Positions 45,315 to 46,268 of a stretch of DNA of 64,000 bases are shown here, in pieces; the first letter of the stretch is position 1, and each line of letters starts with the position of its first letter. The DNA lies in the sequence record OP752703.1. One strand, given 5' to 3'. The position numbers and the translations under genes were made by a program. Under the pieces are notes generated by a model that was not told the origin of the DNA, did no database searches, and saw only the letters and a program-made list of their open reading frames with translations.

Positions 45315-45509
45315 TTAATATTTTCTGCCACTTACTCAGAAGGTGTCTAGTCTTCCTCTGCTGTTTTGTGCTGACTTCCGCCCGCTAAGGCTGTCATGGC
45401 AGGAGCTTAAGCCTGCCCTAGTAGGGGGTCGATAGAGCCATGCTTAATTAGGCTCCCCTGTTAAGGACTCTTCCCGCTCGTTAGACAAGTAAGTGTCAGA
45501 AAATATTAA
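45315..45509 (-). ncRNA. ~195-nt structured RNA with long closing stem
   Basis: 13+8-bp terminal stem; three internal hairpins; no credible ORF. Confidence 0.55.
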
Positions 45510-46268
45510 CTAATCATTAATTGGTTATGCCTGAGAATACAGCATTCCGATGGTTGCCTTTAGAGTCATTATCCCAACGTTGCGTCGTGGGTTCTACTCT
45601 TTTCCACCCCCTCATGGAGGTATCAACCACACCGGCCTAGTTTAAAGTGGTGGCATTACCACTGTCAAGTATGATTACTCATGGTGTCCTCTACCGCCTG
45701 CCTTGCGGGCAGTACGCTTCTGCTAAGAAGTTACGTGCGATTCTTCCATAACATCCCTCTGCCTTGCGAGCTTTAAGATGGCTTGATTCAGATTTCTCTG
45801 TCAAGCATTACGGTGCTATCATCATACTCCGGCGACAACTTTGCATTTAATAGTATAGTTTTCAACCAAAATGAAAGTTATGATTAGCTCTGATAGGACG
45901 TGTGCCGCCGATGCTTCATAGCCTTTTGAGCTACAAAATACACTACGCCCCGTATCCGTTCGTTGGCACTACTTGGACCGTTACTGAGAATATGCCCTTC
46001 GACACACCCTTTTGTTACTGGAAGTCGCTCTTACCCGCCAAGGTTCGAACTATTTCACTTCCTCTGCCTTAGAATCATTCTTAGATAGTTTGCAAGGTCT
46101 AGTGGCTTGCGGGCCACACATCACAACTTTTACGCTGTGGTTGCTTTCGACTTTCTACCGTCCGAACTTCGCTCTTTAAGCCAGCGAACCCTTTTGGAGT
46201 TTGGCTGTTCTGACATTCTGTTTGATGGGGCCTTATACTAGGTGGACTTACCGAGTTAATCATTAGTT
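45508..46268 (-). ncRNA. giant structured ncRNA, GOLLD-like candidate
   Basis: ~760 nt, ends complementary, several GCAA-tetraloop hairpins, no credible ORF, inside tRNA cluster. Confidence 0.6.

Follow-up and report, generated by a model that had tools for sequence, protein, structure and literature searches.

The stretch free of open reading frames (ORFs) that lies within the tRNA array of Stenotrophomonas jumbo phages CM1 and RAS14 is, with near certainty, a genuine gene for the giant noncoding RNA GOLLD. The GOLLD family has been described since 2009, and cage structures were solved in 2025. In the most satisfactory explanation of the locus as a whole, which we consider highly probable, it encodes a minus-strand RNA of ∼895 nt with two domains, transcribed from its own promoter and probably assembling by itself into a cage. 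The stretch of DNA analyzed (the window, 64 kb) is 100% identical to the genomes of phages CM1 (OP883945) and RAS14 (OP752703), each ∼319 kb in length. GenBank carries a feature-free gap of 1.58 kb over the locus in RAS14, and the CM1 record is without annotation. The locus itself is on record elsewhere: supplementary file 6 of Kretsch et al. (Nature 2025; PMC12286853), the GOLLD alignment, lists OP883945.1:177525-177950 under the label Stenotrophomonas phage CM1, and conversion of coordinates from the CM1 match places this interval at exactly 45953..45528 of the window. Xanthomonas phage XacN1 is represented there by two copies, and BUDD and X1 by one each. The CM1 locus has already been published as GOLLD, and the finding is correct and not new; that supplement is the sole link in the literature searched, where no main-text link of GOLLD to XacN1 or to Stenotrophomonas phages was found. 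The present analysis establishes the identity, extent, strand, promoter, and structure conservation of the CM1/RAS14 GOLLD. Its additions are refinements, namely the extent, the strand, the promoter, the 5′ domain, a terminal pairing that is not significant, and the retained loops and pseudoknot.

A preliminary description of this DNA, made from the sequence before any search, had called the stretch a GOLLD-like giant noncoding RNA in a tRNA cluster and had named a cmsearch with the Rfam GOLLD, ROOL, and other large-RNA models as the check. When the whole window was scanned with Rfam 15 at gathering thresholds, the GOLLD model (RF02032) matched the minus strand from 45953 to 45528 at 217.8 bits (gathering score, 150; E = 1e-61), and model positions 1 to 416 of 416 were aligned without truncation, bearing out the call. 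The remaining matches in that scan were tRNAs only, with no match to ROOL or any other large-RNA family. A second, local scan of 44700–47000 with permissive filters (E ≤ 1) returned the same GOLLD match and otherwise nothing of note, again with no ROOL. The signature motifs UCAAAAG, CGCAAG, CUUUAA, and GUAUUCUCAGG are all found in the 3′ domain of CM1. GOLLD RNAs occur in phages or prophages near tRNA genes, and the CM1 locus lies in a jumbo phage amid 29 tRNA genes on the same strand (ARAGORN), the setting that the preliminary description had recognized. They also carry a contiguous, less conserved 5′ domain for a total of ∼700 to 900 nt; that of CM1 measures 469 nt. Expression that increases in the course of lytic growth is a further trait expected of the family. 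The elements of the RNA and its promoter are as follows, in window coordinates.

46457..46430, minus strand: sigma-70 promoter TTGACA-16-TATAAT (−35, 46457–46452; −10, 46435–46430), 12/12 consensus match.
45528..46422, minus strand: full-length GOLLD RNA, ∼895 nt, 5′ and 3′ domains (nhmmer and alignments).
45954..46422, minus strand: GOLLD 5′ domain, ∼469 nt, beyond the Rfam model (RNAalifold helices with compensatory changes).
46208..46422, minus strand: 5′-most junction module, first 215 nt (RNAalifold covariation and covariance model R1).
45528..45953, minus strand: GOLLD 3′ domain, 426 nt (RF02032 match).
45836..45892, minus strand: variable unpaired linker after the first 3′-domain hairpin (unpaired model positions ∼62–136).
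45717..45730, minus strand: hairpin P21a, whose loop carries GC at its center and is proposed to be self-kissing (bridge B8 in the solved cage); named by position.
45698..45712, minus strand: hairpin P21b with an invariant CGCAA loop; named by position.
45646..45663, minus strand: pseudoknot helix AGUGG/CCACU, L22 with J17/22 (covariation); named by position.

The extent of the RNA was derived from orthologous loci in XacN1 (L002), BUDD (L121), X1 (L122), and the metagenome contig JACCDR010178849.1 (L129). Conservation detected by nhmmer and alignments runs end to end from ∼46421 to 45528 in all of these, and identity falls to background on both sides of 45528–46422. The orthologs, which align over their full length (∼890–930 nt), share the same junction module and the same 3′ domain, and all lie in tRNA arrays; the XacN1 ortholog scores 227 bits. 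Among 24 loci from a metagenome scan, L129 was the only true relative, and pattern scans of IMG/VR for further relatives with the same 5′ leader found none. Identity between CM1 and XacN1 is 69% over the first 148 nt of the RNA, 35% in a short hairpin (the one bearing the 5′ arm of a terminal repeat considered below), 47% in the remaining 5′ domain, 76% in the first 3′-domain hairpin, 49% in the linker, 72% in the 3′ core, and 29% after 45528, a profile consistent with a two-domain RNA with a variable linker. The end-to-end homology and this segmental profile together give the length of ∼895 nt (∼46422 to ∼45528), in line with the GOLLD of known structure from the marine metagenome sequence env-38 (833 nt, with a 5′ region of 420 nt). 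The boundaries first proposed, 45508–46268 (∼760 nt), were therefore off: the conserved RNA begins ∼154 nt further 5′, at ∼46422, and stops ∼20 nt earlier, at 45528.

The sigma-70 promoter that had been placed upstream of the stretch holds up, matching the consensus at 12 of 12 positions (46457–46430), with a predicted transcription start near 46422. Its −35 hexamer is kept, in the same position, in XacN1 and L129, where the promoter as a whole is placed as in CM1, and homology with BUDD and X1 starts at ∼46421, directly downstream of it. Because no intrinsic terminator is predicted anywhere in 44700–47100, the 3′ end of the RNA is set only by where conservation stops.

The same lack of a predicted terminator makes read-through and processing plausible. 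Upstream of GOLLD lie ∼320 nt of ORF-free sequence, a suppressor-like tRNA, and a tRNA-Gly with its own 12/12 promoter (46995); downstream, a hairpin element of ∼200 nt is followed by two small ORFs of unknown function (DUF7448 in one case). The flanking ORFs comprise only DUF7448, unknown PHROGs, and an HNH/NUMOD4 endonuclease. GOLLD might thus be made as part of a long precursor, initiated at the 46995 promoter and extending through the tRNA-Gly, the suppressor tRNA, the conserved upstream element, and GOLLD to the downstream hairpin, from which RNase P, RNase E, and RNase III would free the individual RNAs. Besides the second consensus promoter and the absence of predicted terminators in 44700–47100, this origin is favored by a 24-bp stem that begins 17 nt past the GOLLD 3′ end and by a tRNA located ∼70 nt downstream in XacN1, BUDD, and X1. 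However, GOLLD has a conserved consensus promoter of its own directly before its first conserved base, and we regard production from a long precursor as possible, although on balance unlikely. Such a precursor is compatible with the explanation preferred here, an RNA with its own promoter, as both promoters may fire; it would alter how the RNA is made and not what it is.

Two structured elements adjoin the GOLLD gene. The downstream one (45313–45511, minus strand; ∼200 nt) is closed by the 24-bp stem just mentioned, with one mismatch, and lies in the 5′ UTR of a 58-aa ORF (45297–45121); its minimum free energy (MFE) z score is −3.34, and neither arm occurs elsewhere in the window. None of XacN1, BUDD, X1, and L129 carries the element, which is private to CM1 in this comparison; RNase III processing and a MITE-like insertion are both possible explanations of it. 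The same architecture is seen a second time at 48587–48766 (25-nt arms separated by 130 nt, z = −3.50), in an element that opens a further ORF-free stretch of the tRNA array, 1041 nt long (48560–49600); within 48540–49620, no credible Rfam match was obtained, and no nucleotide relatives were found beyond CM1 and RAS14. The upstream element, of ∼195 nt, is conserved and sits directly upstream of the GOLLD promoter in CM1 (46597–46791, minus strand), XacN1 (L002 4935–5128), and L129 (1472–1669), with 125 nt extra between element and promoter in CM1. It exhibits a canonical-looking tRNA T-arm (of the GGUUCGAAUCC type), a closing stem, and the invariant block GAAAGGACUAC. A search of 46430–46880 gave no tmRNA and, at E ≤ 10, no Rfam family above noise, and a conserved 24-mer of the element has no other copies in the viral or genome collections scanned. 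Conceivably, the whole ORF-free gap (45298–46878; 1.58 kb) is a small RNA operon made up of GOLLD and, on either side of it, a structured element not described before, each a new RNA species or a processing signal that works with GOLLD; we hold this reading to be quite doubtful. If it were true, cleavage of the stem at 45313–45511 by RNase III could, for instance, define the GOLLD 3′ end, and the upstream ∼195-nt RNA could be a tRNA-mimicking partner of GOLLD.

Several genes of the surrounding arrays were observed in passing. ARAGORN calls suppressor-type tRNAs in the window with anticodons UUA (46793–46867) and CUA (50693–50768); the former has an odd T-loop and is called by ARAGORN only, not by the Rfam tRNA model. 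XacN1 carries two CUA suppressor tRNAs. Rfam also matches a tRNA of 134 nt at 40383–40516 (39 bits), which lacks an ARAGORN call and is annotated as “tRNA-OTHER” in RAS14; an intron or some other interruption may explain this match. The HNH/NUMOD4 homing-endonuclease ORF (46952–47560) lies between two copies of tRNA-Gly(UCC) and overlaps the upstream copy (47518–47590), a placement suggestive of homing, with duplication or splitting of the tRNA gene as a result. Permuted tmRNAs are present upstream of GOLLD in XacN1 (L002 5363–5807) and L129 (812–1191), with the tags ANANTFDYALAA and ANNDTFDYAMAA; neither ARAGORN nor Rfam detected a tmRNA in the CM1 window.

RNAalifold predicted the helices of the 5′ domain from four independent lineages only, which are the whole basis of the covariation in that domain. 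A helix ACAG.../...CUGU in the first 215 nt exhibits compensatory changes, and a long-range helix in the same part, GUUUGA/UCAAAC in CM1, reads GUCUAG/CUAGA in BUDD, amounting to three compensatory pairs. The latter encloses a GAAA-capped hairpin, a GUGA-capped hairpin whose stem alternates between GGUAUA/UAUGCC and CGUACA/UGUGCG among lineages, and a variable hairpin whose loop is lengthened in CM1 by an 8-nt insertion relative to XacN1 and L129. A profile HMM matches other environmental GOLLD loci from profile position ∼145–250 on. While a search upstream of the IMG/VR GOLLDs with an HMM of the leader sequence alone gave no match, the covariance model R1, constructed from the junction module, yielded matches in colinear order upstream of the 3′ domain at IMG/VR loci L053 (27 bits), L101, L009, and L114; compensatory stems are again evident in these matches, and model positions 87–196 recur. 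Since the module recurs upstream of unrelated IMG/VR GOLLD 3′ domains, the promoter-proximal hairpins are a standard part of the GOLLD 5′ domain and not a separate leader. The preliminary description had noticed hairpins between the promoter and the stretch; these are present, although not outside the RNA, where they form the start of the GOLLD 5′ domain, and their conservation extends to XacN1, BUDD, X1, and one metagenome contig, with compensatory changes.

Those findings bear on whether the RNA could be a unit of 760 nt closed by a 13-nt terminal helix, with the promoter-proximal 150 nt as a separate leader. The ends are complementary, as had been reported: an inverted repeat of 13 nt with one G-G mismatch really exists (46268–46256/45520–45508). 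Its occurrence is at chance level, however, as 10 of 30 dinucleotide shuffles of the 1581-nt noncoding gap gave at least one 13-mer inverted repeat with at most one mismatch, and its 11-nt core motif occurs in the window at chance frequency, without enrichment. The terminal pairing is absent from XacN1, BUDD, X1, and L129, and its two arms exhibit background identity (35% and ∼30%) as compared to 69 to 76% in conserved parts. The 5′ arm belongs to the variable hairpin, where it occupies the enlarged apical loop, within the covariation-supported GUUUGA/UCAAAC junction, and the 3′ arm falls past the end of conservation. In addition, the upstream 150 nt that would be left out as a leader are the best-conserved part of the 5′ domain (69 versus 47%), and the same junction module recurs in other GOLLDs. 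A 760-nt unit is accordingly most improbable. The linker of the 3′ domain holds CUAAUCAU (45886–45879), complementary to the AUGAUUAG/AUGAUUA core of both repeat arms (46266–46258 and 45518–45510); this complementarity is probably due to chance because the motif is AT-rich and many pairings are possible.

That the RNA is highly structured, another early claim, is supported by the covariance-model match and by covariation but not by thermodynamics, the MFE of the 898-nt RNA being unexceptional (z = −1.04). The region proved ORF-free, as claimed: across 45508–46430, each of the six frames contains at least 11 stops, including at least four TGA, and the longest run with TGA as the sole stop is 145 of 307 codons. 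An ORF under another genetic code had been named as an outcome that would speak against a noncoding RNA, and the region stays closed whichever one or two stop codons are reassigned. Although the phage carries the UUA and CUA suppressor tRNAs called by ARAGORN, a protein read through reassigned stop codons has next to no likelihood in view of these stop counts, of substitutions among relatives that are compensatory in helices and devoid of a codon pattern, and of a covariance-model match at E 1e-61.

Three hairpins capped by GCAA, which the preliminary description had picked out, are all present on the minus strand near 46117, 45771, and 45711, as are the pairings GCTTGA/TCAAGC, TAGC/GCTA, and GTGGT/ACCAC. 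The last of these had been taken for a stem; the pairing exists, but it corresponds to the L22-J17/22 pseudoknot seen by cryo-EM in the structure of GOLLD (PMC12286853, PMC12990946). This pseudoknot covaries, with GUGG/CCAC in CM1 and the compensatory GAGG/CCUC in BUDD and X1. Cryo-EM helix names are applied here by position along the Rfam model rather than by structural alignment to env-38. In the P21a loop, the central dinucleotide is GC in CM1, L129, BUDD, X1, and most IMG/VR GOLLDs, as opposed to CG in XacN1, and the stems covary; a GC/CG switch in this loop has been reported as evidence for a symmetric intermolecular contact (PMC12286853). The P21b loop is kept while its stem covaries in 16 of 17 aligned GOLLDs, the CM1 loop reading CGCAA as compared to GgaA in the Rfam consensus. 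The linker exhibits 42 to 49% identity to its counterparts in relatives, versus 72 to 79% (to XacN1 and L129) on either side, and ARAGORN found no tRNA within it (45836–45892). Judged from these alignments, the loops and the pseudoknot that hold the solved GOLLD cages together appear to be kept in CM1.

GOLLD RNAs assemble without protein into two-layered dihedral cages, with 14 chains for env-38 and 12 for Streptococcus agalactiae, and known GOLLDs are 10-, 12-, or 14-mers (PMC12286853, PMC12990946). Each cage has caps made of the 5′ domains and a ring made of the 3′ domains; its chains are connected through kissing loops, and the variable linker faces the interior (PMC12286853, PMC12990946). 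By analogy, the CM1 GOLLD likely self-assembles into an RNA-only cage. Transcription of the minus strand would start at the consensus sigma-70 promoter of the gene inside the 29-tRNA array, and the RNA would fold into a 5′ domain of ∼469 nt, the first 215 nt of which would form the conserved multihelix junction, and a canonical 3′ domain of 426 nt. Copies would then assemble, protein-free, into a two-layered dihedral cage of 12 to 14 chains, held by kissing loops that would include the self-complementary P21a loop, with the linker pointing inward.

Among known systems, env-38 (RF02032; 833 nt, PDB 9MEE, 14-mer) resembles CM1 in the full-length 3′-domain match, the division into two domains, the 5′ one exceeding 400 nt, the variable internal linker, the hairpins P21a and P21b, the L22-J17/22 pseudoknot, and the location in a phage tRNA cluster. 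For the 5′ domain, the likeness is at the level of the domain as a whole. The CM1 RNA is ∼60 nt longer and comes from a gammaproteobacterial jumbo phage, in contrast to the metagenomic origin of env-38. The S. agalactiae GOLLD (700 nt, PDB 9L0R, 12-mer) belongs to the same family and shares the 3′-domain core with CM1 but lacks P9, P11a–c, and P21b. P21b is present in the 14-mer of env-38 and absent from the 12-mer of S. agalactiae (PMC12286853, PMC12990946); CM1 keeps this hairpin and is thus closer to the env-38 type than to the S. agalactiae type. ROOL, like GOLLD, is a large noncoding RNA of phages and prophages that is located near tRNA genes and forms an RNA-only cage, yet its sequence and fold are unrelated to those of GOLLD.

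With the family, the cage structures, and the exact CM1 locus already on record, the value of the locus as a discovery is small. A GOLLD gene of defined strand, promoter, and full extent can now be entered in the 1.58 kb that GenBank leaves unannotated in CM1 and RAS14. The tRNA-array context, together with published suggestions, prompts the speculation that the role of GOLLD is tied to tRNAs or translation late in infection. The GOLLDs of Xanthomonadaceae jumbo phages (CM1, RAS14, XacN1, and X1) belong to culturable phage-host pairs, making a knock-out test of function feasible, and the 5′ domain, delimited here in four lineages, can be used to ask whether variation in this domain sets the stoichiometry of the cage.
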